Below, piece by piece: positions 8,550 through 39,928 of a stretch of 64,000 nucleotides of DNA. A program made the position numbers and the translations under genes. The notes under the pieces were generated by a model that was not told where the DNA came from, made no database searches, and saw only the letters and a list, made by a program, of their open reading frames with translations. Origin of the DNA: Rhodosorus marinus CCMP1338 (Eukaryota; Plantae; Rhodophyta); the NCBI GenBank assembly GCA_029953675.1, contig JAMWBK010000007.1, forward strand, positions 186,001 through 250,000, in the 5' to 3' direction. Position 1 is the first letter of the stretch. Every line of letters begins with the position of its first letter.

Positions 8550-8778
8550 ATTTCCGTTCTATACTCTCTTTATAAAACCAGTTCTAAACTAACAAACCTC
8601 CTCCTCCCCCCCCAAACCCCGCCCGCACCAGAAAAGAAAACTCAACCAAAACGGCAGACGCCCCCTCCCCCGCGCCCCCTCTCCTCGTCCAGTCTTCCAC
8701 TGATTTTATCTACTACTTCACATTCTCGAAACAAATAAACTGTAGAGTTCTTAATCGCTCCAAAAAATCAGCAAAGAC

Positions 8779-8792
8779 CTCTCCCTCTCCCC

Positions 8793-8868
<76 letters not shown>

Positions 8869-8935
8869 TTCTCTATCTCTTTCTCTCTCTGTCTCTGTCT
8901 CTGTCTCTGTCTCTCTCTCTGTGTCTCTCTCTCTG

Positions 8936-9010
<75 letters not shown>
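8779..9010. repeat. (CT)n/(CTGT)n microsatellite, about 230 bp, upstream of RNF121
   Basis: Directly visible dinucleotide run. Confidence 0.98.
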
Positions 9011-9011
<1 letters not shown>

Positions 9012-10052
9012 CTCATCGTCCCCTTCCTCTTCCAATTCTCAAGAGGCACTTTGCCAAAGGTCCTTCCCATTCACCCCGCTGTCCTTGGGACACGTTTTGC
9101 AACCTCTGCTGTTCCCAGTTGTCCCAGGGTTGTCGGTTGTCAGGGGTAGACCTGAATGAATCGGTTAATAGAAGGCTAAGGTCCCCGAATGAGGTACTCT
9201 GGGAAGAGCGCATACAGCGCGCCTCCAAAACTAAGGCAGCATTCAAGTGCAAGAGAGTTAAAACTCGAAGAAACATACAGTCGGGAAAGAGCATCAGGGC
9301 GGTCGCGATAACGCTTGCGCAACCAAGCACTCCTAGCGCTATCTGAGAATCCAAAGACCTCGTTAACAAAGCAATAAGCAAGGCGCAATCTGCAAAGCCA
9401 GACAGCGTTGGTAAGCAAAATTTGGAACCTCTACTCTACCGTTCCCAGTTATCCTAGAGGTTAGACCTAGTGAATCAAGCCTACCTCTTGTTTTTAGTAT
9501 TTCGGTTTGTCTGCTTTGAGGTCGACTTGACAGAGTCGCCCACGGTGAAAAACAATTTGCCTAAGAGTACTAGTGATACTCTGGCTTTCAGAGAGATGCT
9601 ACTACAGTTTCGCCGTTCGCGACTTTGCCAAGGAGGTAGTGCTTTTTCTCTCTGTAGGCGTATCCTTGCACCTCCAGGCGCGCTTTGTATACCGGCTCCT
9701 TTGTGTCCCACGTTTCGTGCATCTAGTTCTCTCAAGGCTTCCACTTCTCTATTTTTTTTTAGACGCCGTTTTCCCGTACATGAAAGAAACGAATGAGCGC
9801 AAGAGTACTAGTGATGGTCTGTGCAGAGTAGCTGGAGAGAGTAGTACAAAGATTGTCGATAGTGATGTTCGAACTCTCACAGGTTGCGTCAATGGTCTTT
9901 GAGAACACGATTTTTGTTTTTTTAATGGCATTTACTGCGTATGCGATAAGGTACGATACGGGACGGAGGCTATGGCAGTTCCTTTCCAGAAACCTAAGCG
10001 TGCAGCCAAATAACAGGAAAAATAGTCTCAGAGCGACGGGACCGTTGATGAA

Positions 10053-11528: not shown

Positions 11529-13805
11529 TCTTTCGGTATGCTTACCTTCCGTATTCAAAAAAATTATCTATTTCAGGACAGATCGGGGCCTCCCAAACGG
11601 ATCAGGGAACTGCATCAAAATGTCGCGAGGTTGTGAGCCCTCCATGGCCCCTCATAAGTGCTAGAGCGTAGGAAAAGAGCAAGATATTTGGTTGCTTACG
11701 GCATGTCTTGATCTCCAAATCTGATCATGCATGCCATACCCCCACTCTCCTCCCATTCTTCGGAAGGAGGAATCTTAGCACATAAAGACAGTCATGCGAG
11801 GAGATAAAAATCCGTTAAAAATTTCGTCTGTCCATTGGCCAGAAAGGACACGCGCTCCTTTTTGATTAGTTTAATACGAACTCCTTAGAGAAAATTTAGT
11901 ATTATTCGATTTTCAAAAGGCGTAGATTGTTTTTACAGTTAAAAATGGGATTTCGGAGAAGAAAATATTGGAATTCTCTCCCCCATTGGAGGAAACTGAA
12001 AATGAATTGACACAGAGATGCAACTGACATTTTCTCCGCCTATCTAGAAATTCGTATGGGTTTTTATTGGGAAACGGTAAACAAGATTGCAAAAAAGGCC
12101 AACGGGCCACTACTACACATATTTCAGTAAAATCCAGTTGGCCAATCCCGACGAACTTAGTTCTTCCCTTAACCAACAAATATCCAAGAAACAAAATCTA
12201 GTATCCAATGAAAAGGCTAAAATCCCAGACATAAAATATATTTATATGATTTGATATTTAATCACCAATCAATCGCCTCGAACGAAAATATATATGTTTT
12301 TAATAACATACTTCAATCTCCAAGGTTTTTCGGGGAAGAAAAAAAAAAAGGAAGGTCCATCTGCAAAGCAACTGAAAGTTTATTTGAAGCTCGTTTTTTT
12401 TTTGGACTTCAATGGAATCAAGCGCCCCTTTCTTCTTTTTTTTCTGTTTTTTTGTGGACACTTCCTCTTTTCCAGCTTTTTGCGGTCCGAAACAAAGATT
12501 ATTCTTGCCACGAAGACCAAAGACACTGATTGGCCCCGAGCAACGGATCAATGTAATTTATTAATTATTCAAGCTCCTATGGGACACCCGAGTACAGATT
12601 GTACATTAAAAACCCCCCGAAAAGGGAGAAAACGACACCTGACAGGTTAAAATAATAAATGAATTTCGTTCAAAACACGAACATATGGCCAAGAAATAAA
12701 GAAATTACCATCCACTGAATCTCAGCTGGTTACCAACGCTCATTCACACTCAACCTAGGGGGTAGATCGCGCAAGTCGAATCTTTGTACTAAGACTTACT
12801 ACTCGCAAAAGCAAATTTAATATATTCAATCAAAAACGCTCTAGCCAATGAAAAAGAACGTATAAAGACAAATGTCAAGTAATAATTAGTTACAATACTT
12901 ATTAGTACGGGAAAGATGCGAATACACAACAATGTTGAACCCCCGTCTCCTTTGTGTACAACATCCCCAATCTTAAAAGCTCGTCCCCTGTTCGGTTCAA
13001 CATTTTCACTTCCTACAAGGGGGGGGGGAGGGGGAAAGGGTTTGGATATTCCACTAAAAGCATAAAATTGTCTATTATTTCTGTATCAGAATCTGATCCA
13101 TGGAGGGGTTTCGGAGAGGATCCTTGCGATTATATATATTTTTAATTATTTGCAGGCTTTTTGTCCTCCACGTTTTCCCTAATTTTATTAGAAGCAAAAA
13201 AGAAAATCGGTCTTCTCCGGCCACTCTCCTTATTTAGCGGAATTTTTTTTGGAGGTGGAAGAGGAGAGAGGTTTTTCGTTTTCGGATTTTATTATATAGA
13301 TATATAATATTTTTTTTTGTATTTTCTTCTCTGTCTATTTTCACCTAATGATAGAAAACGGGAAATGGAAAGGTGACGCCACCGGTGCATGTGTGATCTG
13401 TCAAAAAAAAAATTGCATAGTGAAAGGTGATGCGCCTCTCTGTCTGTCTCTCTCTCTCTCTGTGTCTGTGAGTGTCTCTCTCTTTCATGAAAAAAAATCG
13501 TATATAAGGAGGAGCCAAGAGAAGGGATGAGTAGAGCTGTGGGAGGTAGGCGCAGGGAAATACGTATTCGGATAGCAATTGAAGGAGCAAGGAAAGTTTT
13601 GGTAGGTTTACGAGTTTCGGCCCCCTTTTTTTGTTTTGGTGTTTGTGGTTTTCCTCGTTTTGAGGTTCAGATGCGGACTTGTTTCTAAAGTTTTCGTGTG
13701 TTTTCCGGTCGGCTTGTGCTGTTTTTTTATTGGTTTTGGTAGAGGAGGTTGGGAAGCTTACTGTTCTTAGGCCGTCGAGGAGGTTGGGTTTGGTTTCCGG
13801 ACGCG

Positions 13806-15713
13806 ATGGAGGAGGATCTCGAGGAGGCTAAGACGATTATTCTTATGGGTGGCGATATTGGTGGTACCAATTCGCGTTTTGCCCTTTTCAAGGTGGATGT
13901 GTCGGATGAAATCATGGCGAGAGGGCCCATGGACCACCCACCTTTTGAGATAGTGTATGCGAAGAATTATCTCAACGAGGATTATTCGATGTTCCGTGAT
14001 GTCATGACTGAGTTTTTTGCGGACGCAGAGCACCACTCGGATGTAGGTTTAGTGTTTCAAATCCCTTACATGCTGCGGAAACGACCCAAGCTTAACTTTT
14101 GCTGTGCTCTTTGCCGTAGTTTGCGCGCACCCCACACTTCCATCTGACCGCCTGCTGCTTGGCGGTTGCCGGTCCAGTCGACGACGGCCGCGCGAATTTC
14201 ACTAACCGAGGATGGGTCATCGATTCCCAAGACATAAAGGAGTGGTTTGGCTTCGAACACGTGAGTGCTCTAGCTTTCTTTTGTTTTGCACTTTCCTTCC
14301 AGGGATCTTGATTGTTGCCGTGGGGAGTCACCACCTGAAAAGCCCACTAAAGGTTCCGCTCTGTTTTTTTCCCGTAGGTGCGAGTGGTGAACGATTTCGT
14401 TGCTAGTGGCTACGGTATCCTGACGTTGATGGAAACTGAAGTCACTGTACTCCAGGAAGGGAAATACTCCCAGTCCGCACCCATTGCTGTCCTCGGTGCA
14501 GGAACAGGCCTAGGAGAGTGCTTCTTGGCACCCAACTGGTCTCCCTACGGAAGTTTTTATGACGCCTATCCGAGCGAAGGAGGGCATGTGGAGTTTGCGC
14601 CAAAGACTGATATTCAGGTATCAAAACTTTCCCCGCAGCAACCTTGGAAGAACTGGTCGCACTACCCTATGCTCAGGATGACGGATTCGCTTCACCTATG
14701 CGTAGTTCAAGTGCCTGCAGTTCCTGTCTGAGAAGTTCCAGGGACGAGTATCTGTGGAAAGGATCGTTTCCGGCAAGGGGCTCTTAAACGTGTATGAGTT
14801 TTTCAAGTCGGAATATCCGGATGAGTTCAATGAAGGACATGATCACAAGATCATCAATGCTGTGGAAGCTGGCGCAGTGATCGCTTCGCTAACATACGAC
14901 TACACACTGTGCGCGCAGACGATGGAGTTCGTTTTTGAAGTATACGGTACAGAAGCGGGCTCGGTCGCGTTGAAATTTTTGCCTTATGGTGGCCTCTACA
15001 TCGCCGGGAGCCTGGCGCCGAGGAATATCGAAAGGCTTACTGGGCAAGACTCGTCATTCATGAAGGCCGCGATCAACAAAGGGCGAGTGTCACCGGCTCT
15101 TAAAAACGTAAGCTGTCGCATATCAAATACGGTTGAGAATGTAAGCGTTCATACAAGCAAAACCTGCACTGTACTCTTGCAGCGACCGATGCCTTGTCAA
15201 GAACGAACAAACATGCGGCGTCTTTACGGGAGAACCTCCGGAGAACCGCATCTTAGATTAGCTCGTTCTCACCCAATAGCAGCGGATTCCGCAATGACGG
15301 ACTTTTACCTTGTAAGATACTGACGGCATGCTGATTTCTGTTTGTTTCTTTTGCAGATACCCATCAAGGTCGTCATGTGCGAGGACTTGGGCATGAGAGG
15401 GTCTCAACTTTTGTCGTACAGGATTTTCCTGGAATCTAAGCCACCTGCCATTCAAGCACAGTTGCCTCCAGTCACCGATACTCTGGATACAATGGCTAAT
15501 CCAGACATCCCAGCGATTAGAAAATCGGACGGGTATGCGGATGGACCGTACAAGGAGCCGCATATCGCTTTAACGTTGCCACCTAGGCATGCCATGGATA
15601 TTACCTTCGTCGCGGAGATTGCTGTTGCGAGTTCAATTGCGGCCTCCATAGCCCTAATTATTGGATTTGGAGCTCGTAGCCTCACAAGGATGGATTTGGC
15701 CAAGGGCTCATGA
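13806..15713 (+). CDS. glk: Bacterial-type (Glk family) glucokinase with a C-terminal hydrophobic tail, about 5 exons
   Basis: Motifs GGDIGGTNSRFAL, CLAVAGPV, TNRGW, VVNDFVASGYG, VLGAGTGLGE, SEGGHVEFAP, VSVERIVSGKGL, GGLYIAG. The last exon ends ITFVAEIAVASSIAASIALIIGFGA...GS*. Confidence 0.93.
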
Positions 15714-17344: not shown

Positions 17345-17569
17345 TATCTTCAAGCACACATGTACAGTCCCTGTTCTTCAAAGACACAGAACCAAAGCCC
17401 TTAAAACCTGCTCACTCCTCAAATTTAATATCCTGGATCAATTAAAACACCTCAATTCCTTATGTACAGTTCTGCATCTTCCCTCCAATGCCACAGGTCA
17501 CCACTCCCAACCCTTTATAACTCCACTCGTCATCTCCCACCAAACCATTCAAACCCCGACCCAACTCAA

Positions 17570-18035
17570 AACCATAATTAAGACTTTTTCGAAACAAATG
17601 CGTAGTTTAAAGTCTATAAATATTGTATATATTAAGAAAAGGATTAAGAGGATTAGAATTAGCATTTCCACGTTTCTATTCTGGGCAATAGATGGAGCCT
17701 TACGGCTTGTTTTTTTTTTGTATTCATCGCGCTGTAACCTGATAACCATAATTACGACGATCTAAATATAGATGCGTAGTTTTAAGTATGAATATATTGT
17801 ATAAGAAAAATAAAAAGATGTTGATGATTAGAATTAGAACCAAATAGTCTCTATTCTGGGATCTTTGTGTGGCGTGTGCTTTTTTTTTTTGTATTCGTCA
17901 CGCTGTAACCTGATAACCATAATTACGACGCTCTAAAAATAGATGCGCAGTTTTAAGTATTTGTATATTGTATAAGAAAAATAAAAAGATGTTCTTGACT
18001 AGAATTAGAACTAAGTTGTCTCTATTCTGAGAAAT
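17570..18035. repeat. AT-rich tandem repeat, about 2.7 copies of a 171-174-bp unit
   Basis: CCATAATTA anchors at 17572, 17746 and 17917. ATGCG(T/C)AGTTT, TTAGAATTAG, TCTATTCTG and GCTGTAACCTGATAA recur. Confidence 0.92.
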
Positions 18036-18049
18036 CGTGTGCCTTTCCA

Positions 18050-18313
18050 CATTCACACATCGTAGTACATACGGTAAGATCGATACGCACATGGCATACG
18101 ATGGGTGGATGCGGAATCATACCGTTACGGTTTCAAATGGAGGATACAGTTTGAACAGTACAAGATATCGATCATCTTCACATTATAGTAGAGTACTTAA
18201 GCCGAACATATCGGCCCATTAGTCAGTGGAACAATAAAGGAGGCACCGAAGTTTGGAGGGTGAAATCAGTTTCACCCTGAGGTCAAGGTCAGGAATCCTT
18301 GAAAATTCCAACA
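18050..18313 (+). repeat. Upstream LTR copy (5' part missing or diverged), ending ...TTCCAACA
   Basis: Aligns with 23027-23272 (CATTCACACATCGTA...GAGGTCAAGGT) and is followed directly by the PBS. Confidence 0.88.
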
Positions 18314-18325
18314 TGGTATCATCGC
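18314..18325 (+). promoter_or_regulatory. Primer binding site TGGTATCATCGC, tRNA-iMet-like
   Basis: TGGTATCA directly after the LTR-terminal CA is the usual start of a copia PBS. A mirror copy lies on the minus strand near 18811-18821. Confidence 0.8.
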
Positions 18326-18404
18326 TTGGTGCGATTTTGTAAGAACTGCTTGGTGCGTTTTTACGGGAATAGGGATTGTGTGTGGTGTTGCCTCAGGATG
18401 GCGG

Positions 18405-18680
18405 CGAGGACGAGGGGGAGTGTTGCAGAACACTGACGGTAGCGCGAAATCCATCATGCGCCCGAGGACGAGGGGGAGTGTTGCAGAACACTGACGGTAG
18501 TGCGAAACCCTTTAAGCGCGCGAGGGCGAGGGGGAGTGTTGCAGAACACTGACGGTAGCGCGAAATCCTTCAAGCGCACGAGGACGACGGGGAGTGTTGC
18601 AGAACACTGACGGTAGCGCGAGATCCTTCAAGCGCGCGAGGACGAAGGGGAGTGTTGCAGAACACTGACGGTAGCGCGAA
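18405..18680 (+). repeat. Tandem array of five 58-bp units, each a PPT plus the start of an LTR
   Basis: TGTTGCAGAACACTGACGGTAG starts at 18421, 18479, 18537, 18595 and 18653, each preceded by GAGGGGGAG or a one-base variant. Confidence 0.97.
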
Positions 18681-18701
18681 AGGTTTCCTTCAGGCGCGTC
18701 A

Positions 18702-18886
18702 TGTTCTGCAACGGTCCCCCTCGTCCTCGCCGCCATCCTGAGGCAACACCACACACAATCCCTATTCCTGTAAAAACGCACCAAGCAGTTCTTACAAAAT
18801 CGCACCAAGCGATGAGACCATGTTGGAATTTTCAAGGATTCCTGACCGTGACCTCAGTTTCATCCTCCAAACTTCGGTACCTTCCT
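18702..18886 (-). repeat. Inverted copy of LTR end, PBS, short internal region, PPT and LTR start
   Basis: Reverse complement of about 18240-18430. The ORF track shows the same peptide (PPRPRRHPEATPHTIPIPVKTHQ) on opposite strands. Confidence 0.95.
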
Positions 18887-19117
18887 GCCGCTGCTGACTG
18901 TGTTCTGCTGTTGCCGCTAATCTCCAAATCAGTATAAAGGAAACCAGACTTTGCAACAGCTTTAATCACTTGCCTACCGTTCTTTTCTACGACTAACGTT
19001 TTTCCATCTAAAGATATCTTTATCTAATGGAGAAACCGTTTTCAATTAAACTACTAAGACTGACATTCATTTATCTAATGGAGAAACCGTTTTCCATTAA
19101 TCTACTAAGACTGGCAT

Positions 19118-20076
19118 TCAATGAGCCTTCTGGAAGATAGTGTCCTTCAGCGACAACAGATCTCCTTTTCGCGTCTTCAGCTCGACCGTACCCATCTTGT
19201 CGAGGGTCTTCGTTGTCCCGTCCCCGAATGTGACGTCAGTGTCAGCCATCCTTGTGGGGCCTGAGAATGCATTCTCCGAGGTGCACATGTCGTCCGTTGC
19301 TCCAGAGTCCAGCACGAACCTCGCTGGAGCTCTGACGGCCGTCATTTCTGCTGGAATCTTCGCTTTTCCGGCCTGTTTTCCTCCTTGTCCTGCTCCTCAG
19401 GACAGTTGGCTCGGATGTGTCCGGGTTTCTTGCACCCGTAACACAGAAATCCCACGGGGATCTTCTTCTTCTTCTTCTGCACCGTTGTGACGTGGTGCGT
19501 GCTGGAATCCGTTTTGGACTTGATTTGCTTGGACCCTCGAAGTCGGTCCAGCTCCTCGAAGTCGTTACAGAAACCTGTCCAGCCTAGAGTTTTTTTTTTT
19601 ATCCTTCGCGGCATAGAACTTGAACTCCGCATACTAGTCGCCCCTCACCTCCAAAACCTTCCGAAGGACCCGACGTTTTTCTTCATCCGTTGGCGCCACG
19701 CCCGTTATCTCCCTGATCTCCGCAAACTGGGTTTGTAGCCAGTTCACCAGAGAGCGTGGCGACTCGTTGGTGTGCATCTCGCGCCAATGCACTTTGCCTC
19801 ACACGCTGTCTGCCGTCTCGCGGGAGGAGGGCTCGTATCTAGGCCGAAGTGCCGCCCATACCTGCTCTGGCGCTGCCTCTCTCGAAGAGGCAAAGGCAGT
19901 GTCCAGCGCCGGCCCATCCAGCACTCCGGAGAACACCGTAGAGACATACTGTCTCTCCTCTTCCGTCGCGTCTATCGGGTTGTCGATCACATCCCTAAGA
20001 CCTTTGACGGTCAGGTAGCACTCTACCTGGTGTCTCCAATTCCGGAAGGATCGGAACGAATCCTGATCCCCGGTGA
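19118..20076 (-). pseudogene. Copia gag and aspartic protease, inverted relative to pol
   Basis: FTGDQDSFRSFRNWRHQVECYL (gag N-terminus), CYGCKKPGHIRANC (CCHC knuckle), FVLDSGATDDMC (protease). Frameshifted. Confidence 0.92.
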
Positions 20077-22966
20077 ACACTGACGTCACATTCGGGGACG
20101 GGACAACGAAGACCCTCGACAAGATGGGTACGGTCGAGCTCAAGACGCGAAAAGGAGATATGTTATCGCTGAAGGACACTATCTTCCAGGCGGCTCATTG
20201 AATGTAGTCAGTCTTAGTAGATTAATGGAAAACTGTTTCTCCATTAGATCTTTAGATGGAAAAAATTTGTCGTAGAAAAGAACGGTAGGCAAGTGATTAA
20301 AGCTATTGCAAAGTCTGGTCTCCTTTATACTGACTTGGAGATTAGCGGCAATAGCAGAACACAGACAGCAGCGGCAGCAGTAGTCCGTAGCAACGAAGAT
20401 ACGGATGCCATGGGATGGCACAGGAGGCTCGGACACCCTGGTGCTGGAGCTGTGAAACAACTAGAAAAGGACGGTGTTTTCCGCGTGAACGACAGAGTAC
20501 CTGACAAGTTCGAATGCTCCAGCTGCGAGAAAGCAAAGACCGCGATGGGTGGAAGTGGACCTCGCAGGAAGGCAGAGACGTTCGGCGAGTGCATACATAC
20601 TGACATCGCCGGACCGTTCCGTGCAGGAAGACATGGAGAGATTTATATGGAGGAGGAGTGTTCGTGGATGAGGCAACAGGGGTGCTGGGAGCGCATGCCC
20701 GTGAACACAGAAGTCTCATTGATGAAGGCTTTAGGGAGCATGTCCTGGTAATGAAAACGCAACATGGGGCAAATGTAGAAAGACTCAAAAGTGACAACGC
20801 ACTTGAGTATAGTAGCATGAAACCCCTACTACATGACCTGGGTATCACGTGGGACCCGAGCGCCCCGTATACTCCCTCCAGCAACGGGATAGCGGAGCGA
20901 ATGATGAGAACAGACTCAGAAAGACTGCGTGCCACCATGTTCGACAGCGGAGCGACGGACGACATGTGGCCGGAAGCACTACCGGTAGTCGTCGCCAACA
21001 TCAATCAACCCCACGAAAGTTCCTGAAAGGGAAATGTCCAGCCGACACAGATAGGGGCAGCAACATGGATCTGGGAAACGCATATCCGTTTGGGTGTGAG
21101 ATCACATACAAGCGGTACGAACCGGGGAAACAGGGTAAACTGGATAGCAGGTCCAGTACAGGAATCCTCATGTTCGTAGCGGACTCACATGTGGCGAGGA
21201 TCTGGGATCCGACAACTGATAGGTTCCTACAATCGCGATCTTGGCGCGTTTCTGAAGACGTCTTCCCGACCAAAGAAGTGAATCTCGAAAAACGAATGAC
21301 TTCAAGACCCAGAGGAAGGGAGGTTTCAGTGAACCTCCTGCGGAAGGGGGACTCCTTGTACGACGTACCGAGTCCGGAGTCTTGGAATGAAGCGTTCAAC
21401 GGCGCTTTCGCTGAAGACTGGAGACGAACTGCGGCCGAAGAGCTCGGATCGTTACGGGCGAACCGGACATGGGAACTTGTCCCTCGGAGCGAGGTTCCCA
21501 GGAAGGCGAGGATTCTTGGGTCACGACTTATCCTGAAAGTCAAGAAAAATGCAGATGGATCAATTCAACGGTTCAAGGCGCGACTCGTAGCTCGAGGATT
21601 TGCCCAGAGATATGGCAGTGACTACGAGGAGGTCTTCGCGCCAACGGTGGAGTTCGCCAGCGTTCGAGTACTCCTGACCATAGCAGCGACGGAAGATCTC
21701 GAAGTGGAGCAGGGTGATCTGAAGACTGCGTACCTGAATGCGAGCCTGCAGGAAGAGATTTACATGATGCAGCTTCGCGGCATGGAGGAACCGGGAAAGG
21801 CGGAGCACATCTGCTGCCTACGGAAGAGCTTGGAGGGCCTAAAACAAGCGGGAAGAGAGTGGCACCGGAAACTAAGCAACGATCTCCTTGCGCAAGGTTT
21901 TTAGCAGCTGCGAACAGAAAGCTGCGTGTACCGGAAGGAGAAGTGCATCATCGCGGTCTACGTAGATGATATGCTTATCGTTGGGAGCCGGGCTGACGTT
22001 GAGATAACGAAGAAGATGTTGTCAAACCTGTACGACATCAAACCTCTAGGAGCGGCACGAGATTTCCTCGGTGTGAGAATAGAGCGAGACCGGAGGAAAA
22101 GAGAAATCTACCTCTCGCAGGCAGATCATATTCGGAAACTTACCCTCGCGTACGGTTTGAAGGGATGCCGCCCCTTATCCACACCAATCTCCATCGCACC
22201 CTCTACGAAAGAGACTTCGATGGAAATGACCTCATCGCCGTTTCAGGAGCTAACTGTATCACTCCTCTACTTAAGCACTACAACGCGAGCTGATATAAGT
22301 TACGCAGTCGCCTTGATCGCGCGAAAAATGGCAGATTATCGACTCGGAGATTTCGAAAAGGCGAGGCGGATCCTGCGATATTTGGCAGGAACGCAGAGAA
22401 AAGCAATGCAATTGGGGGGTAAATAAAAGACGGATGCAGGTATGGGCAACTCCTCGGACGATGGTGAGCAGAGGCAAATCAGATATCAAGTGACCGGATA
22501 CTCTGTTGCGAGCTGGGCCAGTCACGAAGACAGTAGGAGTACTTCAGGTTTGTTGGTGACAGGCGATGGAGCGCCAGCGGCTTACCGATCATGGAAGCAA
22601 CGCTCGGTGGCTCAATCGACGGCGGAAGCGGAGTACCAGGCGCTGGGGGACATGATGACGACCCAGAGGTTGGTACACGAGTTCATCGTCGAGACTGGCA
22701 GGGACATGAGTATGCCCTTAGTCGCATACAAGGACAACATGTCGTGTCTGCGGTGGGCGACATCCGGGGATAGCAGGATGTCGCGCCACGTATCTGTCAA
22801 ACTTCAGTACGCACGCGAGAGGTGTGCGTCCGAAGAGGTACAGCTGAAGTACCTCAGCACCGACGAGATGGTGGCTGACCTGTTGACCAAGCCTCTGACG
22901 AAGGAGAGGACGGAGATATTGAGGTCCGGGCTGGGCATTGTAGATCGACTCTCTGCTGTGGTATGA
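20077..22966 (+). pseudogene. Copia pol remnant: protease tail, GAG-pre-integrase, integrase, RT, RNase H
   Basis: WHRRLGH, IHTDIAGP, SDNALEY, PSSNGIAER, RFKARLVARGF, QGDLKTAYLN, GLKQAGREW, AVYVDDML, GYSVASWA, STAEAEY, DLLTKPL. Frameshifts in the integrase. In-frame stops at 21902 and 22424. Confidence 0.95.
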
Positions 22967-22970
22967 GAGC

Positions 22971-22979
22971 GAGGGGGAG
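22971..22979 (+). promoter_or_regulatory. Polypurine tract GAGGGGGAG
   Basis: Purine run just after the RNase H stop and directly before TGTTG. Confidence 0.85.
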
Positions 22980-23466
22980 TGTTGAAACAGTCAATCGCGA
23001 CCATGCGCTCTCAACACGTAGAAGGGCATTCACACATCGTAATACATACGGTAAGACCGATACGCACATGGCATACGATGGGTGGATGCGGAATCATACC
23101 GTTACTGTTTCAAATGGAGGAAACAGTTTGAACAGTACAAGATATCGATCATCTGACTGTTATTACAGTAGAGTACTTAAGTGGAACATATCGGCCCATT
23201 AGTCAATGGAACAATAAGGAAGGTCGGTACCTTCACTTCGGTAAATTTGGAGGATGAAACGGAGGTCAAGGTACGCTGCAGCTATGTTGGACTCTACGCT
23301 CCGCGATTCGGCCTTGTCCTATCGGTTTGTTCCACTCATCATCGAGTTTGCTTTGGTTTAGTTGATTGTGTCGGCTCTCGTTGGCTTCGTGGGCTCTTTC
23401 GTAACAGCCCCAGTCGCCTTGACAGCCTCCTCACGGAGCTGTTCTTGACCTTGTGGCATTCCAACA
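22980..23466 (+). repeat. 3' LTR (TGTTG...CAACA) with about 170 bp of extra internal sequence
   Basis: Starts TGTTGAAAC after the PPT. The right end is placed at CCTTG...ATTCCAACA by similarity to the end of the upstream LTR and is less certain. Confidence 0.75.
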
Positions 23467-24326
23467 CGGCTTTCTTGTTCGCCGCGCGTCATCAGCGTCT
23501 TGTTTCTCGCTTCTCAGGGTAGTTAGGCTCTGATAAACTGATGATGAATCCTTGCGCAAATTTCCAACGCCTTTGTTTCGTTTTTCGGGATATTAAGGAT
23601 TTTTTGAGGGTCTTGGAGAGACCTTTTTTGGCGTTTTTCTTTGGCGAATGGTATTTTTTAGGGGTCCGATAAATAGTACGATAAACGTTGTAAGATCTGA
23701 ATTTAGAAATAATAAATAGCGTTTGCTGAGGACACTATCGTTCGATATAGGTCTATTAAACCTGAATAGAAAATAAATAAAAGGTTTCATCCGATAAATG
23801 GTCCGATAACCAGCGAAATTACCGTCCAATATTGTAAACTCCCTTCAGAAGTGGTTGTTTTACTCCAATTCATTTCCACCTTCCAATGTTATGACAGCCT
23901 GTCAACCTCAGAAGTATTCATTATTCATTACATGGTAGTGACAGTTTCTAATAACGAAAAGTAATTTAAATTCATAATATGAGAGAGAGCTTCACCACGG
24001 TGATGATTGATTATTAGGTTAGCGTTGATTGAATATTGGACCTCTTTATCGGACGAGAAATAGGACCTGTTTATTTAAAGAATATAAATCAGACATCCCG
24101 CAAGTTTGTATTTTTTGTAATATTGTACTGATTTGAACATTTATCGGACGCGTCAGATAAACGTTATTGGACTGTCTATGACAACCGGATTTTGAGGCTT
24201 CGTTCTTGTTGATGGAGAGAGGTGAAAGAGTAGTTTCTGGGAGAGAAGGGAAAAGAGCTTGAAGAGATTGTGTGACACTCTGCACTATGCATTTGTGAGA
24301 GCTTTGGCAGTAGGGAGCTTTTGGGT

Positions 24327-25223
24327 ATGGGGAAGGGGGAAGACAAACCGACTAGGGTTCTCGAGAATGAACGGGAACTCGAGTATGGTGTAGTTGGTGA
24401 TGCGATTGTTGAGCCGATCAAGCCCGGGAGCGAGGAGGAGAAGGATATTTCTGTCGTTGATGAGGACAAATCTGAACCCGATCATGACGGAGCTGAAGGA
24501 TCTTTGGGCAATTCGATAACACCCGTGTCAGGTGGGAGCGTTATTACCGGCGGTGATGAGGAAAAGCCGGAACACGAATATGACGTAACTGAAGAGCCGT
24601 TGTTCGAATCGATAAAGGCGCTGTTGACGTGCTGGACCGTTGAGAATAGGATGGTAAGTTTGGGGTTTGGTTGGGTCTCGTATTGGGGGTTTTGTGTAGA
24701 AGCTGTCGCTCAGTGGGCGTGGCTATTTTGTTTTTTCTGTTGTGATGATTGGTAACTACTATGTTAGGACTCGTATGATTGGGATCATTCGTCGATGTTC
24801 TACGCACGTGAAGTTTCCGAGATGCCGCTGGACGACTATCTAGATAGAATTTTCAAGCACTCGACAAAGTCCGTCAGCTGCGGTGTGGCGGCGGTTATTT
24901 ATCTGAGAAGAGCGGCAAAGATCAATCCGAACCTATGTATGAACGCTTTCAATGCACACCGTTTAATAATGATGGCGCTGACAGCCGCCGTCAAGTTCTC
25001 CGAGCATGTGGTTTGCTTGAATTCGTTCTACGCTGAAGTGGGAGGGCTTTGCTTAGAAGAGTTCAACGCTCTCGAACTAGAGTTCCTGTTGGCTGTCGAC
25101 TTTCAGTTGATCGTTTCAGAAAAAGAGTATCTGGAATGTAAGAGAATGCTTGAGGATGTGATTACTCCTTCCGAGGTTGTCGATGTCCTCACTAACGAGC
25201 TACCTCTATGTGTTGTGGGGTGA
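24327..25223 (+). CDS. PHO80/cyclin U(P)-family cyclin with an acidic N-terminal extension, 2 exons
   Basis: LDDYLDRIFKH, AVIYLRR, NAFNAHRLIMMAL, KFSEH...NSFYAEVGGL...EFNALELEFL..VDFQL. One GT-AG intron at about 24655-24766. Confidence 0.9.
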
Positions 25224-25953: not shown

Positions 25954-28900
25954 TTACACCAGCCTAATTATGGAGCGATAGCGCTCCTCGAGGATAGGAA
26001 CCATGTCGCTATCGAGCCCGCAATGGCGGGCATCGACAAACTCTAGTCCCTCCAAGCGCTCGACCAGCGCGAGCAACGAGTCTACCGCTTCGCGGCTTCC
26101 CAGCAAAGGAAGCGGATGACGGTCCGAGTTGCCGAGGAAGCTGAGATGTCGAACGAGGGGGTACTTCGTGGATGTCTCCATACTGCTTACAAACTGTACA
26201 AGAATATTTAGAAACTCCGGGGAAAGAAAGTTCTTCTGCAAATTAACACTTAAATATTTCCGCCTTCCTCCAAGGAGGCGAGAAAGCGCAGCCGCGGTCT
26301 GCGACGGACGATTTCCTAAAGAGTTGTAGCCAACCAGCAGTTCCCTAATCAAGACCGGGTGAGAAACCAGAGGATCAGACATTCACGATCGATAAGCAAG
26401 AGAGAACGTGCGGATCTAATACCTCAGGTGAGGAAGATTAGCGGACGTAGATATGGCATCCGAGATCGCACTAAACCCTTCAGCCCCAATGTTGGTCGCG
26501 GTCATGTCCAGCCTTTTTAAATACACAAGCCTATTTCCTCCTTGAAACAACGCCTCCAACCCTCGAGCAGTAACTACTCGGTTTGCGCTCAGGTCCAATA
26601 CGGATAAATTTCCTCCATGGTTCCCAACGCTTTCAACCAGCTCCGTGACGCCCTCGTCATCCAGACCTCTCCCGAAGGCGTTTAGCACACCATCTTCGCC
26701 ATATCCGTCTCTCAGCACGCGAGCTTCCAGAAGACATTTGAGAGCGTAGGAAAATAATTCAGTTAATGATATTCGACAATTTGGTGAAACATTCCCCGAA
26801 CAGTCCCAGGAACATTGGCCGGAACATTGGCCGGAACATTGGCCGGAACATTGGCCGGAACATTGGCCGGAGCATTGGCCGTAACAGTGGCCGTAACATT
26901 GGCCGAAACATTGGCCGAAACGTTGGCCGCATCATTGGCCGGAACTTCGCTTGAACAATTTTGCTAGCGCAGGGAGGCTTTGAACAACTTACCAACAAGG
27001 CGCTTCCTGACTATTGTTTGGGGATCTTCCTCGTCCACGATCCAGTCAGTGATCAGTCCACGCGGGTGCGCAACTTCCGGGCTCTTTCTCGTGGTACTAG
27101 GGGTGAACAAGTGGCAGTTGGGGGGGTCAGTTCTAGTCGGACAAATTCTCGGTTCCACTCCGTTGAAGGGAACAAACCAACCTTGAACTCCTTCCCGATG
27201 CTGAGTGACTGGAAGACGTGCTCCTGCTTGTTTGTAGGATCGATAGCCTCCTCGTTGGAGTGGGTGACGGTGTGACCCAATCCTTACTTCCTGTTGGACG
27301 CGCAGAATCGAGCTCCGGGTACACGTTGTCTAGAGTACGTTGTCTGGAAACGTTGATCTGCCTGTGGAGTTTAATCTCCTCGTTGTCGCTGAGGTCGGAA
27401 CCAGCTGGAGGGCTTTGATTTCTTGCGGGATTCCATGGATCTTCATCGTTTTCAGCAAGCTGGAAAGGCGCAACATTCTGGGCTTCGCTCGGTGAGACAC
27501 TGCTACCCGCTTTTCTCCTCTTCCTTACAACGGGCGGGGACAGCTCGGCGTCAACCTCGTTGATGGACTCTGGTATCGAGATAACCTCTCCATCCTCTCC
27601 GCTGCTAGTGGAGCTAGATTCAACTGCTACTGGAAGTCTATCCAATAGCTCCTGATACTCGCTCGCCGGTCCACCGCCCACAACTGACTTTTGCAACTCA
27701 GTGAGCTTGGAAAGCGCCCTTCGTTGCAAACGCAAGTCGCTGGCGCGTACAGAGAGCTCGTAGCTGCTCTTAAACGCATCCAAAGCCTGTTCCACCTCCC
27801 TGAGCTCCTCGTGGACCAACCCGTACACAAAAAACGCCTCTGCAGCACCGTCCGGAGATTCACAGCGCTTCATCCGTTCAACCTATGGTCGCCAACGAAA
27901 AAAACACAGAGATTAGACAACAGCTGTCCGAGTGACCCAGCTCGCCAGCAACGGGAGCGGGAGTCTCAAAAAAAAGCTGCGAAAACAAAAGCCAAAGAGC
28001 AACTTACCCATTCAACAGCGTACGGAAGCGCAGCCTGAGTCTTGCCAGCCTCTAGAAGCGCGTTTACGAGTTCGTCCAGGGTTTCAGTGTATGCGTCCCA
28101 ACCACCGTCTTCTGTCTCCTGGATGAGTCCGAGACGGATCTGTGATTACAAAAGGCATCACCCCCAAGGATGAGTCCCTGAGTTCCAACTCGCCCGCCCG
28201 CAACTGCAGCTAGGAGAGGACTTACCCGAATGTGCTCTGCGGCGCTTTCATAGTCAGAAAGTTCCACGTACAGACGAGCAATTTGACCTCGAATTTCGGC
28301 GCTGTCGACTTCTTCGCCATTCTCCAATTTCTTGAGAATCTTCCGAAGTCGTGATTCAGTAGCGACTCGCTTCGCAGCGACCGTACATAGCTCATGGGCC
28401 TCTTCTTTCTGCTCAGGGGCACACGTTTCCTCGTACCTGTTGGCAAGGGGAAAAGCACCAACGACATTGAACACCAAGTCCGGTTTGGAGCTGAGTATCC
28501 ACTTCCTCCTACTCGTAGCATACCTCCGGTAATGTTCCGCGGATACGCAGTAACGACGCAGCTTTGCGTTAATCTCCCCGAGCTGAAAGCAGGAAATCGC
28601 TTCGTTTGCTTCGTCTCCATTCAACTTGCTGAGTTTCAGGCCCTTTTCGGCGTACTCAAGGGCCCTTTTGTAATCGTCGAGGTGTATGTATTCGATCACC
28701 ATGTTGTAAGAAACGAGGTACTTGGCAATGGAGTCTTGGCGTTTGGATGCGATCTCCATTGCATCTGCCATTAGCTCAATCGCGCGGCGAGTTTCTCCTC
28801 TGCTGCTTTTTACGAGTCCAAGATTCAGCGTCGCGTTCTGTTAAACAAAAGCACGGAAAGGCTGAGCTTCTTTCCCGGGCAGGAAACTGGTCCTGTTCCA

Positions 28901-31875: not shown

Positions 31876-34800
31876 ATGAAATCGTTTTGGAAGAAGAATT
31901 TCCACACGCCGTCTAAGAAGAAGACGTGCGTAGTCGAAATCTCCAGCCATGTGCTTGTTGGCAACTATGTCGAGGGCCATTTCGATGAGGACTTACAGGA
32001 CTTCCTGGAAAGGCGGAGGAGAAAGACGGGTAGCACAGTAAATAAAGTGCTTATAATTGATGTGGGACCCGATCCGTGGATGTACGAGGTTGCTCCCGGA
32101 GTTGTGGTCTCTGAGCCCTGCCATGTCGGACCGTTCCTTATGCTGCCAGGTTTGAATTCAGTTTTCGAGACTTGCGCAGATATCGTTGACTGGTTCAAAA
32201 CGAACGCTTTTGACGGCTGCGGAGTAGTTTTGATAGTCGCGTCATCTTCCTTCCCCAACTTCAATCGGCTGGCGCCTGTTGCATTGGTCCGCATCGCCCT
32301 CCTCCCAATGCCAACCTAAATTCCCGAATACCACGCATGTTAGTTACAAACTGACGATCATACATTTTGGTGGTTTTTCGACGGTTTTTCCCAGGTCGCG
32401 TCTTCACTGCTGATGTACATTAATAGAGCTGATAGCGCACTAGACGCGCTTGAAACGTTCCTCTCGAAATCGCGAGAAGCTCACCTGGTTGGCGCTGACA
32501 AACTTGGGGACCCGACAGTAAAACTTCCCAACTTGTGCAAGTATCTCAAGCTCTTCTCAAAGTTATGCCTGAAGCCCCACTTCCCCGTAGTGATTCCCCT
32601 GGAGATAATGAAGATTATGTTCCAGGGCAAGCTCAAGCTATCGAAGAAGCAAAGGTGGAACCCGATTATTAGATTTTACGTGTTTGCCAAAGGGCAAGGC
32701 GAAGGAGAATGGTACGTTGCTGCTGCGTCAATCAAGTGGGCGCTCTAGCACGGAAGCTTGAGCTTGTGCCCAGTGTACTACGGGAATAGGCTTCCTGTTA
32801 CTGCTGTTCATGGCTCCATCGCTGAACCAACTGTGATTTGGTTCTACCATCTTTTGCAGTATGGTTATTGGACAGAGTGACTACCGCGGAGACGTGATTT
32901 ATGGGGATGAGTTTGCGTCTTTCCAAGTTAACACGCTGGCGTTTGGAGACTTTGTCCTCAGCTTTGAGCACCACTACCCAAAGGAGAATCGGACGAAACC
33001 TCTGTTTTCTATAGCTCAGCATACGAGCTTCCTGAGCGCTCCGTACACTCGTTTCAGAGCTTCCGACCTGGAGGTCTACCCGGACGCGAAGGACATCGTG
33101 ACCATTGACAAGGACTTCACAGTAGACGTTTTTCTACGTACAATGCCCGCTGTTACCGGTAATGCCCAGCTTCTCCTTCCTTTGCTTTCCAGTCTCCGCA
33201 AGTTCCAAGTTCACCCGCCCCGCTAACGATCGCTCTCATGCTTCATCATCATCTCGTTCAGAGGCCTACGTAAAAAGTGCCGCTGCTATGGCAGAAGAGT
33301 ATGGGAAGGTAACAGTCGGGATGCTGGACCTAGTGACGAGCCAAATGTTGTCGGTCGAGGAGATCGTGAGCTTGAGACCTTCTGATGATCCTCTCGTTCC
33401 CAAAATATCCCCCAAGGAGATGCAGAGCACACTCCAGGCGCAGTCCGAAGCGCTCCACAAAATGCTTGACAACGTACCCGATGACATGATCGCAGACGTC
33501 TTGACCACTTTCGATCAATACCAAGATGCTGGACAGGTATGATGCATGCATCCCGTGTGCTAATGGAGCCGATAGGTAGAGCCAACTTTGCTGCTCGGAC
33601 GTGCTGAAACTAAACTTGAAATTGTGAACAGAGGGCGACGGGTAGTGAGCGAACAAGCGGAGAGGACAGAACTCGTGAGTACCTGAACGCCGAGGACGAG
33701 GACGAGCTGGACCAAATCTTGCAGGAGGACTTCGGAGGCGATTTTCACATTATCGAGAATGACGAAGAAGCCTGGAACTCTGATGCCGAATTGGACTCGC
33801 CAACAGAAAGCGGTCAAGCCATCCCAATAGTTATAGAAGGTAAATCATATGCCAAGCCTTGAGTCTTTTGCAGGGTCCGTTGACTCTTGAACGTACTCAT
33901 TGGGCTGTGTTTTTCTAACGAATAATTCTAGACGATCTAGATTCTTCGTCTGAAGAAACGAGATCAAAGAAGAAGAAAAAGCGGAAAAGAAAGGCAAGAG
34001 AAAGCGTGGAAGAAGATCCTTCCATCGAGCAGATCGAAGACGAGCAAGATGGTAAAAAGTAGCAAAACCTCAGCGCAATGAATTCCTCAGCCGATTGTCT
34101 TAGAACAACACCAACTCTGCTGTTTTACAGATCATCTGGAGCTCACAGCCATCGATGCGTCAAACCTGATCTTGGAGGTGAGTCTCTGGAAGCAAAAGTC
34201 ACGACATACTTTTCGCAGTTTTTAAGCTAGTCTCCCAATTTTTCTAGGTCGATGAAGTCGTCCCTCCCCCGGCCATGCCGCTGCCAGACTTTGATGAACA
34301 CAGGCGTGTAGCAGCTGGAGGTGATACCAACCTGGAGGAATTGATGCCAAATTTCTTGCAAGGTGAGGATTTGGCACCTTCAGAACACATTTCATTTGGC
34401 CTCAAAGTCGCGTGCTCACGATTGAAATCTTTTTTGGCATGTGTCATTGTAGTCGGGGACGACGGAGAGTTCGTGCCAGCCGAAGAAGGCGAATCTGGAG
34501 ATGGGGAGGAGCAGGAGAACGTACCCATATGGATGATGGCTCAGTTTGAATCGGTGCCAAGCCCTACCGAACCTCCGGGCGCTGAAGCCTACGGTAGCGC
34601 CGCTGGTGTTACGCTTGCTGCAGCTGGAGCGCCTCCACCACCACCACCACCACCACCACCACCGCCACCGCCTAAGGCTACCGTGTCGGGTGCGAGTGAG
34701 GACTCAAAGCCCGTAGCTACACCACCGAGACCGGCGGTGACGGCAGTCGAAGAGTCAACTGCGAGTCCAGTGCTACCTCCCCCACCTCCCGCTTTGAGCA

Positions 34801-38392: not shown

Positions 38393-39928
38393 TTAGAACG
38401 GGCTGATGCATGGATCAAGGAGAGGTTCAGCGAGGGCCGTTCGAAGCCAGCGCGATTGGCGATTTCGGAAGAGCAGAAAGACCTGACGCGTGCCTCTTCG
38501 CTTCCTCGTCCCGGCGGTGCCGCGAAAGAGATCACGAGCGCGGATTGCGTAGAGCCAAGCCGATGAAGCAAACCCGCGCCCGCGCAGCAGGGAATGCGCT
38601 CCAGTGGTAATTGTTCCAACGTGCTTGTCCTCATCCGTAGCGAACCGGCCATTGTACGACGCCCCATACCGCGTCCATTCATCCACGTCATCAGCATTCG
38701 GAGCGAAGATCAGTCCACCATCCCTGGGAATCCCTTTCGCGCCCGCCTTGAGCCGAACCAGAACAATATCCGAGTCCCCAAGTCTCGACGCTGGAGAACG
38801 ATCCACCTTTACCCACCTGTTTTCCAAACCAGGCCGATGTCTCTGCTCATCACCAATATCCAGACGGAACATTTCGTTTATCATATCTCGATCCAGAAGA
38901 AGTCGCTTCCCCTCCCGTCTCCGCTTCTTAACTCTTGACGTGCCAGTCTTCCCTCTGCCCCGAAAGATCCGACTAACATCCCGAGGACAATCATGTGGAT
39001 ACTGCACGCATCCACCTTCGAAGCCAATAGACCTAAGCTCTTCTGCACCGACAGCTACCGCTCCAGAGTAGACCAGCTTGATCCATAAATGCATTGCCCA
39101 TCCGGAAGGAAGCAGCAGATCTAGCCCAGCGCCGAAGCCTCCAGAGAGCAATGGGGTGGTCGGCAGGATCACGACGTAACACGAGCGTTGCGTGATATCG
39201 TCAAGGGCTTCAATGGACGAGGTGCTCGTGAGGTAGCTGTGGTCGCTGTCACGGAAGATCTTCGCCGCAGAGGGCTGGAAGCTTTGACTGAGTTGGATGC
39301 CAAGGGATCGGTTGAGGCAGCGCCTGGCCTCAGGGCCGATCAGTCTAAGGCGAACCAGACGGTGCGTGATGTCCTTTCCAGCTCGTCGTAGGGCACCCAG
39401 CTGAGGGCTTTCTGGATGGGCAAAGACCCAGGGTTGACGGTCTTCTGGACCGGGTTGCTTCATCATCACGCTGCCGAAGCCCGGCTCGGCGCGGATTTTC
39501 GAGTCTGAACTGGGACGAAGCTCAAAGCAGCGAACGAACGAGATGTCCGCGACTACAACACCATGCTCCGCAGCACGAACCGCCGAGCGAGTTCCCCGAT
39601 CGACCGCCCGAAGTGGGATCACCGTCCCACACACTCGCCCCAAATGAAACCTCTTCGCGAACCACACGTGGGTCTCCAAACTCAGGCCTTTCCTCGCTCT
39701 AGCCATCCAAAACGAGCACTTTCCTCGTTTCGCCCTTCTCGAACCTCCATTCCCGTTCACACCCCCGCGCACCCTCCTCCTTCCACCCACCAAATGACTC
39801 TTACTCCGACGACGATGACGCCACTCAATCGACCTCACCCTCACTCCATCGCCAACTAAAACCTCAACTTCTCCAAGTCTGGACCTTCCAATCTCCCAGC
39901 TCCGTATCGTCCCACTACTCAACTTCAT
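38393..39928 (-). CDS. POP1: RNase P/MRP subunit POP1
   Basis: LETHVWFAKRFHL, DRGTRS, DISF, LLLPSGWAMHLWIKLVYSGAVAVG, YPHDCP (POP1 and POPLD motifs). The start codon is uncertain. Confidence 0.88.
   Translation of the reverse strand: MKLSSGTIRSWEIGRSRLGEVEVLVGDGVRVRSIEWRHRRRSKSHLVGGRRRVRGGVNGNGGSRRAKRGKCSFWMARARKGLSLETHVWFAKRFHLGRVCGTVIPLRAVDRGTRSAVRAAEHGVVVADISFVRCFELRPSSDSKIRAEPGFGSVMMKQPGPEDRQPWVFAHPESPQLGALRRAGKDITHRLVRLRLIGPEARRCLNRSLGIQLSQSFQPSAAKIFRDSDHSYLTSTSSIEALDDITQRSCYVVILPTTPLLSGGFGAGLDLLLPSGWAMHLWIKLVYSGAVAVGAEELRSIGFEGGCVQYPHDCPRDVSRIFRGRGKTGTSRVKKRRREGKRLLLDRDMINEMFRLDIGDEQRHRPGLENRWVKVDRSPASRLGDSDIVLVRLKAGAKGIPRDGGLIFAPNADDVDEWTRYGASYNGRFATDEDKHVGTITTGAHSLLRGRGFASSAWLYAIRARDLFRGTAGTRKRRGTRQVFLLFRNRQSRWLRTALAEPLLDPCISPF

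Follow-up and report, generated by a model that had tools for sequence, protein, structure and literature searches.

Positions 18050-23270 of the window, the whole 64,000-nucleotide stretch of DNA analysed here, hold a single degenerate Ty1/copia element of the red alga Rhodosorus marinus CCMP1338. An R. marinus protein at NCBI is 100% identical to its match in the window. Our main reading, to which we give a probability of roughly 65%, is that the locus is a dead element in which a complex rearrangement, probably polymerase template switching, rebuilt the 5' third, and any hairpin RNA from it would be a possible by-product. An earlier note on this DNA had recognized a copia relic, and the Pfam matches bear this out (Pol_BBD, zf-CCHC, gag_pre-integrs, rve and RVT_2, together with SH3_retrovirus). 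Gag with a zinc knuckle, protease (PR), integrase (IN), an RVT_2 reverse transcriptase (RT) and RNase H (RH) are all present, and their order is normal once the 5' block is re-inverted. The copy is neither live nor autonomous, with stops and frameshifts across gag, PR, IN and RT/RH. In the decayed IN, RT and RNase H part (20378-22966, forward strand, from ORFs and Pfam matches), the frame changes near 20650 and at 21030-21056, and the ORFs ending at 21904 and 22426 are followed by in-frame stops.

Two direct repeats of the TG...CA type flank the element, the 3' LTR starting with TGTTG and the 5' LTR ending in CAACA, and both are truncated at their outer ends. The 5' LTR (18050-18313, forward strand, delimited by alignment with the 3' LTR) ends in TTCCAACA and matches its partner only from 18050 on, so that its initial 47 nt are gone. 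The upstream LTR named in the earlier note is thus present but not complete, and no second copy of the 3' LTR start sequence was found within the window. A TATA-like TTATAG (18183-18188) and an AATAAA (18233-18238) are retained. Between 18050-18243 and 23027-23223 the LTRs are 94.3% identical, with 11 substitutions at 193 sites (5.7%). Directly 3' of the LTR end is a PBS-like sequence read as TGGTATCATCGCTTGGTG (18314-18331, forward strand), which begins at 18314 with TGGTATCATCGC; its TGGTATC start is typical of copia PBSs for initiator tRNA-Met. A tRNA scan of the window returned zero tRNA genes, hence no host tRNA to match against the PBS. At the other end, the PPT and 3' LTR occupy 22966-23270 on the forward strand (from the LTR alignment), the real PPT being a purine run that ends in GCGAGGGGGAG at 22979, immediately upstream of the TGTTG at 22980. 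Past ~23270 the match to the 5' LTR weakens, the final ~25 nt being missing or replaced. With the outer end of each LTR lost, the element lacks flanks in which a target-site duplication could be sought. The locus resembles ordinary degenerate Ty1/copia elements in its domains, domain order, LTRs, PBS-like sequence, PPT and decay through stops and frameshifts; what sets it apart is the inversion of a 5' block together with two inverted duplications, a tandem array in the 5' UTR whose units repeat a PPT/LTR-start junction copy, and outer LTR ends truncated on both sides.

Repeat comparison confirmed the earlier claim that one block is inverted and that sequence is duplicated at its borders. If the normal order is written as a (LTR end, PBS and UTR), e (gag and the first half of protease), d (the second half of protease to the pre-integrase domain) and f (the rest of pol), the order at the locus is a, array, a-inverted, d-inverted, e-inverted, d, f, and three new junctions are therefore needed. 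We infer the family's normal PBS-to-gag layout, including whether the array is part of it, from a copy that is not itself intact; the sole close relative (L001) spans RT to the LTR start, and the 5' end lies outside its coverage.

The first inverted repeat (IR1) pairs 18241-18438 with 18697-18882, a slight adjustment of the coordinates first proposed. Without gaps, the best block covers 156 nt at 97%, and the whole arms differ by 7 substitutions at 183 sites (3.8%) and 2 indels. The left arm (forward strand) runs from the final 73 nt of the LTR through the PBS and 5' UTR to the first PPT-like/TGTTG motif, and carries a private 12-nt palindromic insertion (GGGTGAAATCAGTTTCACCC, 18258-18277); the right arm is an inverted copy (reverse strand) of UTR, PBS and LTR end. 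IR1 was said to cover the LTR end, PBS and PPT, and the first two stand, but the 'PPT' there duplicates the PPT/LTR-start junction at an internal position, as GAGGGGGAGTGTTG. The arms enclose, as had been noted, a 58-bp tandem array (18404-18696, forward strand) of five units, the last one partial, which makes up most of the loop of hairpin 1; TRF called 4.8 copies at 91% over 18404-18681, and the partial fifth unit extends to 18696. Each unit contains GAGGGGGAGTGTTG followed by GCAGAACACTGACGGTAGCG. We rejected the possibility that the unit is a diverged PPT plus U3 start: only a 14-20-nt PPT/TGTTG core is common to both, and the remainder aligns no better than shuffled sequence (195 of 2000 shuffles scored equally well).

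The second inverted repeat (IR2) pairs 18885-19242 with 20077-20377 in three blocks at 93-98%, with 15 substitutions at 298 sites (5.0%) and 4 indels overall. Consistent with the earlier description, its arms cover the C-terminal half of protease to the pre-integrase domain and enclose gag. The left arm, an inverted copy (reverse strand) reaching the start of the pre-integrase domain, is 57 nt longer than the right, mainly through a 51-bp tandem duplication at 19019-19120, and at 19242/19243 it runs without a break into inverted gag/PR. This loop of hairpin 2 (19243-20076, reverse strand) holds gag with its zinc knuckle and the N-terminal half of protease with a DSGA motif; the initial codons of gag are absent, two in-frame stops interrupt the block (19799-19801 and 19634-19636), and a frameshift lies near a T run at ~19583-19593. 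In the right arm, protease sequence from the C-terminal half onward is copied in forward orientation as far as the pre-integrase domain, with a private 1-nt deletion near 20262-20266. One protease frameshift falls at the same place in both arms, and joining the two frames extends the Pfam Pol_BBD match, which scores 37.8 bits over profile positions 1-61, to positions 1-79 of 81 with 43.9 bits. Since this frameshift is common to both arms, the copy was already defective when it was duplicated.

Of the three junctions, J1 lies at 18696/18697 with microhomology of at most 2 nt, J2 at 18883-18886 with ~2 nt, and J3 at 20076/20077 on the 9-nt ACACTGACG (20077-20085), which has an inverted twin at 19234-19242. 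The observation that the last of these breakpoints sits on an 11-mer shared with the array held up: GAACACTGACG spans it at 20075-20085, and each of the five array units holds one copy, giving 6 matches against 0.02 expected by chance. A further copy of the motif, GCAGAACACAGACAGCAGCG (20354-20373, forward strand), agrees with an array 20-mer at 17 of 20 positions and lies 4 nt from the outer end of IR2, with an inverted twin at 18889-18908. Apart from the array, the sole places in the element where the motif occurs are the two ends of the segment duplicated in IR2, in both arms, which points to motif-guided template switching. The microhomology-driven switching put forward earlier fits these data and is strengthened by them, since the duplicated segment has the motif at either end.

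Judging from the sequence features described here, namely multiple junctions with microhomology, templated inverted segments and motif copies that bound the duplicated segment, template switching by a polymerase is the most likely origin of the rearranged order. On an already defective template, the polymerase would have copied forward as far as the array, reversed along a, jumped through ~2 nt of microhomology to the end of d, copied backward across d and e, and finally used the 9-nt ACACTGACG to switch to the start of d, where forward synthesis resumed. We infer both this path and the identity of the polymerase, which could be reverse transcriptase, acting before integration, or a DNA polymerase acting after it; end-joining may account for J1 and J2 (at most 2 nt of microhomology each). 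Microhomology-mediated template-switching rearrangements include those of the FoSTeS/MMBIR type and those made by retroviral reverse transcriptase. The locus resembles both in having several junctions within a small region, inverted templated segments, junction microhomology (9 nt at J3, ~2 nt at J2, at most 2 nt at J1) and breakpoints clustered on a repeated motif. It differs in that the event is read from sequence alone, which cannot assign a polymerase. As it stands, the locus is of value mainly as a compact, clear case of a multi-junction rearrangement inside a retrotransposon, with breakpoints that track a repeated motif.

Arm divergence (3.8% in IR1, 5.0% in IR2) does not differ significantly from that of the LTR pair (5.7%; Fisher p = 0.56), and the idea that the arms are younger than the LTRs is unsupported. 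The ages being statistically equal, RT and DNA polymerase both fit. After duplication the arms decayed independently, acquiring the 51-bp tandem duplication, the 12-nt palindromic insertion and the 1-nt deletion as private lesions. There is no sign of constraint on the arms, because their divergence is close to that of the LTR pair and is accompanied by private indels; following the rearrangement, the locus has decayed like neutral DNA.

Fold-back chimeras occur in long-read data, and a Nanopore read of this kind, or the erroneous joining of several copies of the family, could in principle give an inverted structure by assembly error. The CCMP1338 genome was indeed built from Nanopore reads (assembled with NextDenovo, polished with Pilon), but the library was size-selected at 6 kb (PMC10250338), and the rearranged part, at 2.1 kb, fits well within single reads. 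A fold-back also predicts near-identical arms, whereas we observed 3.8-5.0% divergence and indels of 1, 3, 8, 12 and 51 nt; arms that have diverged about as much as the LTR pair, each with private indels, argue against a simple fold-back. ORFs cross the boundary between the IR2 left arm and inverted gag/PR as expected for one continuous inverted piece, and we consider an artefact highly improbable. Exact-protein look-ups in public assemblies gave no record for six ORFs of the element, some of which span J2 or J3, and none for four neighbouring ORFs.

Insertion of a second, reverse-oriented copy of the family into the first, with later deletions leaving the present pieces, would also produce arms diverged by 4-5%, as expected between two separate copies of one family. 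However, a reversed copy would read d-inverted, e-inverted, a-inverted, and the observed a-inverted, d-inverted, e-inverted still requires an extra rearrangement; we rejected nested insertion on this segment order. The identical protease frameshift in both IR2 arms also speaks against it, as does the array motif on both sides of the duplicated segment, which is unexpected for a random insertion, and no extra LTR ends or target-site duplications were found inside the element. Overall we regard this origin as very unlikely. An inverted block with duplicated edges is what a simple inversion from two pairs of staggered single-strand breaks leaves behind, with inverted duplications at the inversion ends. 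That model gives the order A, D-inverted, middle-inverted, A-inverted, D, whereas we observed A, A-inverted, D-inverted, middle-inverted, D: the duplicates adjoin their own originals and not the opposite ends of the inversion. We rejected staggered breaks on these grounds and hold them to be extremely unlikely as the source.

Folded as a single RNA, the region gives the two adjacent long hairpins that had been proposed, with 183 and 286 arm-to-arm pairs and longest helices of 101 and 64 bp; the fold of 18230-18895 has z = -28 against shuffles. In an Rfam scan, long-hairpin microRNA models matched only below threshold, and we dismissed the MIR1437 precursor (RF04159; 88.1 bits against a gathering threshold of 168) as generic long-hairpin likeness. 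An RNA polymerase crossing the locus on either strand would make an RNA with two long near-perfect hairpins, and given Dicer and Argonaute in the cell, these would be cut into small RNAs against the R. marinus copia family. The relic is a possible, unproven source of hairpin RNA in this model, and any small-RNA output would be a possible by-product and not a selected role.

A stronger proposal is that this is a Mu killer-type hairpin-RNA locus, in which a transcript from the LTR or by read-through from a neighbouring gene forms two hairpins, and their Dicer products silence intact copies of the copia family in trans. The locus has the corresponding structure, in that part of a transposon is duplicated in inverted orientation and is able to fold into a long hairpin, and the arms cover cis elements (U5, PBS and UTR) as well as coding sequence. 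The 5' LTR keeps a TATA-like element and its PBS-proximal part; it has, however, lost its first 47 nt. Arm divergence matching the LTR pair, with private indels, also weighs against a silencing role, although such neutral-looking decay is compatible with small-RNA production because long hairpin RNAs tolerate bulges. Nor was a close RT or gag-PR relative found in protein and metagenome searches, which covered sequences outside the unannotated R. marinus genome assembly: the closest RT match was 77% (P0001, a 1568-bp Logan contig) and all other protein matches were at most 51%, a metagenome scan reached at most 49%, a gag-PR protein search returned zero matches, and no R. marinus protein was among the RT or gag-PR matches. 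To our knowledge, RNAi is altogether absent in some red algae, such as Cyanidioschyzon merolae, and our literature search found no paper that connects Argonaute or Dicer to Rhodosorus. Among mesophilic red algae, at least Chondrus crispus encodes one DCL and one AGO (PMC12026948), and maize Mu killer itself, a partial inverted duplication of a transposon, provides a precedent (PMC3440606). On balance we think a silencing locus unlikely.

More doubtful still is the full form of this proposal: in a unicellular red alga, the relic would be a naturally occurring 'killer' that is transcribed into a double hairpin and acts against its own copia family, having arisen through a single event of template switching on a motif present in the UTR array and twice in pol. 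If true, it would be the first transposon-derived trans-silencing locus described in Rhodophyta, and would illustrate how a motif repeated within a retroelement predisposes that element to produce its own silencer. Little is known of RNAi and transposon control in red algae, and if the locus is transcribed and diced, Mu killer-like taming of transposons by hairpins would arise in these algae too. The locus is a concrete target for existing CCMP1338 RNA-seq and future small-RNA data.

Endogenous hairpin-RNA and inverted-repeat siRNA loci, such as the Drosophila hpRNA genes and Arabidopsis IR71-type loci, have long genomic inverted repeats with a short spacer, as here, and are Dicer substrates if transcribed. 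Those loci are defined by sequenced small RNAs, and Mu killer (Muk) is known for its transcription, its small RNAs and its heritable silencing of MuDR, its hairpin RNA being thought to arise by read-through from a flanking gene (PMC3440606), whereas the R. marinus locus is defined by its DNA sequence only. Like Muk, it is a partial inverted duplication with terminal cis and coding sequence from which a long hairpin RNA is possible. Muk derives from the DNA transposon MuDR and forms one hairpin, whereas the R. marinus locus derives from an LTR retrotransposon and has two separate hairpins.

Pfam searches of the element at 18050-23270 place a zinc knuckle and a protease beta-barrel on the minus strand (19118-19632), and a pre-integrase domain, integrase core, SH3-like domain and RVT_2 on the plus strand (20293-22426). 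Its LTRs are detected as direct repeats at 18050-18243 and 23027-23223. The 3' LTR starts with TGTTG at 22980, directly after a purine run ending GCGAGGGGGAG, and the 5' LTR ends with CAACA at 18313, followed by TGGTATCATCGC. The initial 47 nt of the 3' LTR have no counterpart in the 5' LTR or anywhere else in the window; the 5' LTR keeps a TATA-like TTATAG (18183-18188). At its other end, the 3' LTR ceases to resemble the 5' LTR about 25 nt before it would be expected to stop. Because the frames are broken in gag (two in-frame stops and one frameshift), protease (frameshifts), integrase (two frame changes) and RT/RNase H (two in-frame stops), the element is, judged from its sequence, a dead Ty1/copia relic. 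Domains, LTR pair and broken frames thus agree with the earlier note, which had called it a copia relic. Frames were read piecewise, with no repaired or consensus element built. In gag, the frameshift coincides with, or is close to, a stretch of about 11 T (19583-19593) and could be a homopolymer length error, the assembly being Nanopore-based. A 171-bp AT-rich tandem repeat at 17565-18035, present in about 2.7 copies of which the best two are 90% identical, stops no more than about 15 nt from where the truncated 5' LTR starts (18050), and may be part of the event that deleted the LTR start or an unrelated minisatellite.

A repeat finder, BLAST and global alignments all recovered the same structure within the relic, namely the inverted block with duplicated edges that had been proposed from the sequence. 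The arms of the first inverted repeat, IR1, lie at 18241-18438 and 18697-18882 with a 58-bp array between them (18404-18696), and those of the second, IR2, at 18885-19242 and 20077-20377. If a denotes the LTR end, PBS and UTR, e gag and the first half of protease, d the second protease half up to the pre-integrase, and f the remaining pol, then a normal element reads a-e-d-f and the locus reads a, array, a-inverted, d-inverted, e-inverted, d, f. The boundary between d-inverted and e-inverted (19242/19243) is normal protease read backwards, crossed by an ORF that matches Pol_BBD. The novel junctions are J1 (18696/18697), with microhomology of at most 2 nt, J2 (18883-18886), with about 2 nt, and J3 (20076/20077). 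A reversed nested copy predicts the order d-inverted, e-inverted, a-inverted, and a staggered-break inversion predicts that each duplicate lies across the inverted block from its original; both models were rejected because neither yields the observed order.

The array unit contains the 20-mer GCAGAACACTGACGGTAGCG, and a scan of the element found this motif in only two places outside the array. The exact 9-mer core ACACTGACG at 20077-20085 (inverted twin 19234-19242) terminates the IR2 arms on their inner side, at J3, where microhomology is therefore 9 nt, and a 17/20 copy at 20354-20373 (inverted twin 18889-18908) lies 4 nt from their outer end, at J2. Segment d, the one duplicated, is therefore bounded by two successive motif copies. 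On its inner side IR1 stops (18438) at the final base of the 11-mer GAACACTGACG in the first array unit. As the earlier note had observed, this 11-mer sits on the 20076/20077 breakpoint (20075-20085) and recurs once in every array unit, giving six matches against 0.02 expected. Given a 5-kb element with two non-array motif sites, such a coincidence of breakpoints and motif would be very unlikely to arise by chance. We read the rearrangement as template switching guided by the repeated motif, possibly aided by pairing between motif copies; the copies flanking d and the 9 nt at J3 favor the switching mechanism suggested previously. From the observed segment order and junction sequences we infer a path in which copying would have run forward up to the array, reversed back along a, jumped to the end of d, continued back through d and e, and made a motif-borne jump to the start of d before going forward again. 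The array units begin with GAGGGGGAGTGTTG, in two cases with a single mismatch; it is the 14-mer of the true PPT/LTR-start junction at 22971-22984. Outside this core, the unit resembles the LTR start no better than shuffled sequence does. What had been taken for a PPT within IR1 is an internal mimic of that junction; the functional PPT is the one directly before the 3' LTR.

The protease frame is broken at the identical spot in both IR2 arms, between ...LSLKD and YLP.GSLN..., indicating that the template was already defective when it was duplicated. Joining the two protease frames with a single X, the sole join made and for one Pfam scan, extends the Pol_BBD profile match from 1-61 to 1-79 of 81 and raises it from 37.8 to 43.9 bits. 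Further lesions are private to one arm and arose after the duplication. The left IR2 arm has gained a 51-bp tandem duplication (19019-19120) and a stop; the right one has lost 1 nt near 20262-20266, at a place where its partner stays in frame; and in IR1 the left arm has received a 12-nt palindromic insertion (18258-18277). The IR1 arms differ from each other by substitutions at 3.8% of sites, the IR2 arms at 5.0% and the two LTRs at 5.7%, values that are statistically indistinguishable (Fisher p = 0.56), so that rearrangement and insertion are of about the same age. The event may date from reverse transcription, with a defective RNA as template, or have followed soon after in chromosomal DNA. 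The divergence of the arms also speaks strongly against a fold-back read artefact as the source of the structure, which at 2.1 kb is small enough for single Nanopore reads. The CCMP1338 assembly (GCA_029953675.1; 31.2 Mb, 15% repeats, 8392 proteins) was built with NextDenovo from Nanopore reads size-selected at 6 kb, with three Pilon rounds, and Illumina RNA-seq exists for it (PMC10250338; BioProject PRJNA778797). The 12-nt insertion creates a perfect small palindrome, GGGTGAAA-TCAG-TTTCACCC, and neither the inverted copy nor the 3' LTR contains it. The matching 3' LTR stretch (23224-23245) has a different small local rearrangement around GGTACC, and the LTR seems liable here to fold-back changes on a small scale.

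Folded as a single RNA, 18200-20420 forms two neighboring hairpins, as the earlier note had anticipated. Hairpin 1, from the IR1 arms, has 183 arm-to-arm pairs, a longest unbroken helix of 101 bp and its loop at 18439-18696; hairpin 2, from the IR2 arms, has 286 pairs between its arms, a longest unbroken helix of 64 bp and its loop at 19243-20076. Taken by itself, hairpin 1 exceeds shuffled sequence in folding stability by 28 standard deviations. The physical premise of the earlier silencing proposal is sound: any RNA transcribed across this stretch, from either strand, would contain two long hairpins, about 95% paired. The Rfam family MIR1437, a long-hairpin plant microRNA precursor, aligns to hairpin 1 (18358-18776) at 88 bits, below its gathering score of 168, and is a structural look-alike only.

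Mu killer, the maize silencer of MuDR, is a fair analogy, being a transposon-derived partial inverted duplication capable of forming a hairpin; its hairpin RNA is thought to come from read-through from a neighboring gene (PMC3440606). We nevertheless consider it improbable that the locus is a working silencer of its own copia family. The hairpins and the retained TTATAG would favor such a role, but the 5' LTR lacks its first 47 nt, there is no sign of the arms being kept similar, and searches with RT and gag-PR yielded only a single close relative. This relative, a 1568-bp Logan contig (SRR32518362) with an intact 479-aa RT/RNase H ORF, aligns with 21482-23009 at 75% DNA and 77% protein identity; its PPT and TGTTG LTR start match those of the element, at the same PPT/LTR junction. 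No R. marinus proteins were among the RT and gag-PR matches, which is weak evidence because the gene set may omit transposons and genomic DNA lay outside these searches. Some red algae, for example Cyanidioschyzon, are not known to have RNAi, and our literature search found no paper linking Rhodosorus to Argonaute or Dicer. A single DCL and a single AGO have been reported from Chondrus crispus (PMC12026948). Our preferred reading, at a probability of roughly 65%, is that template switching guided by the motif rearranged a copia element that is now dead and decaying neutrally, a potential source of hairpin RNA. The locus is a further example of transposon-derived inverted-repeat loci and microhomology-mediated complex rearrangements, both known, and its significance is modest unless expression and small-RNA data indicate otherwise.

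Ordinary host genes lie on both sides, placing the relic in gene-rich DNA rather than a repeat island: a glucokinase-like gene (13749-15323, recognized by eye only) and genes for a PHO80-type cyclin (24321-25223), the RNase P/MRP subunit POP1 (38393-39928), a cullin (47867-48736) and the nuclear cap-binding protein subunit NCBP1 (59451-61394, minus strand, a 647-aa ORF). The sole database relative of the NCBP1 ORF is a Rhodosorus marinus cluster. KAJ8903174.1 (NCBI, 2.2-Mb contig) matches it at 100% over both exons, and the MMETSP R. marinus strain at 94% in protein and about 89% in DNA. Across 55708-61788, the MMETSP transcript assembly is 85-89% identical to the window in coding DNA; since identity is only this high, the two strains named R. 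marinus appear deeply diverged and are possibly separate species. A 475-aa ORF at 34275-35702, with no Pfam match, contains 57-69-bp proline/alanine-rich repeats and sits where the GC content of the window is highest (58.6%). Other repeats are a 12-bp minisatellite, AACATTGGCCGG, in about 16 copies (26775-26969), and a dense array of 8-12-bp repeats over about 320 bp (8743-9060), where GC skew is strongly negative.
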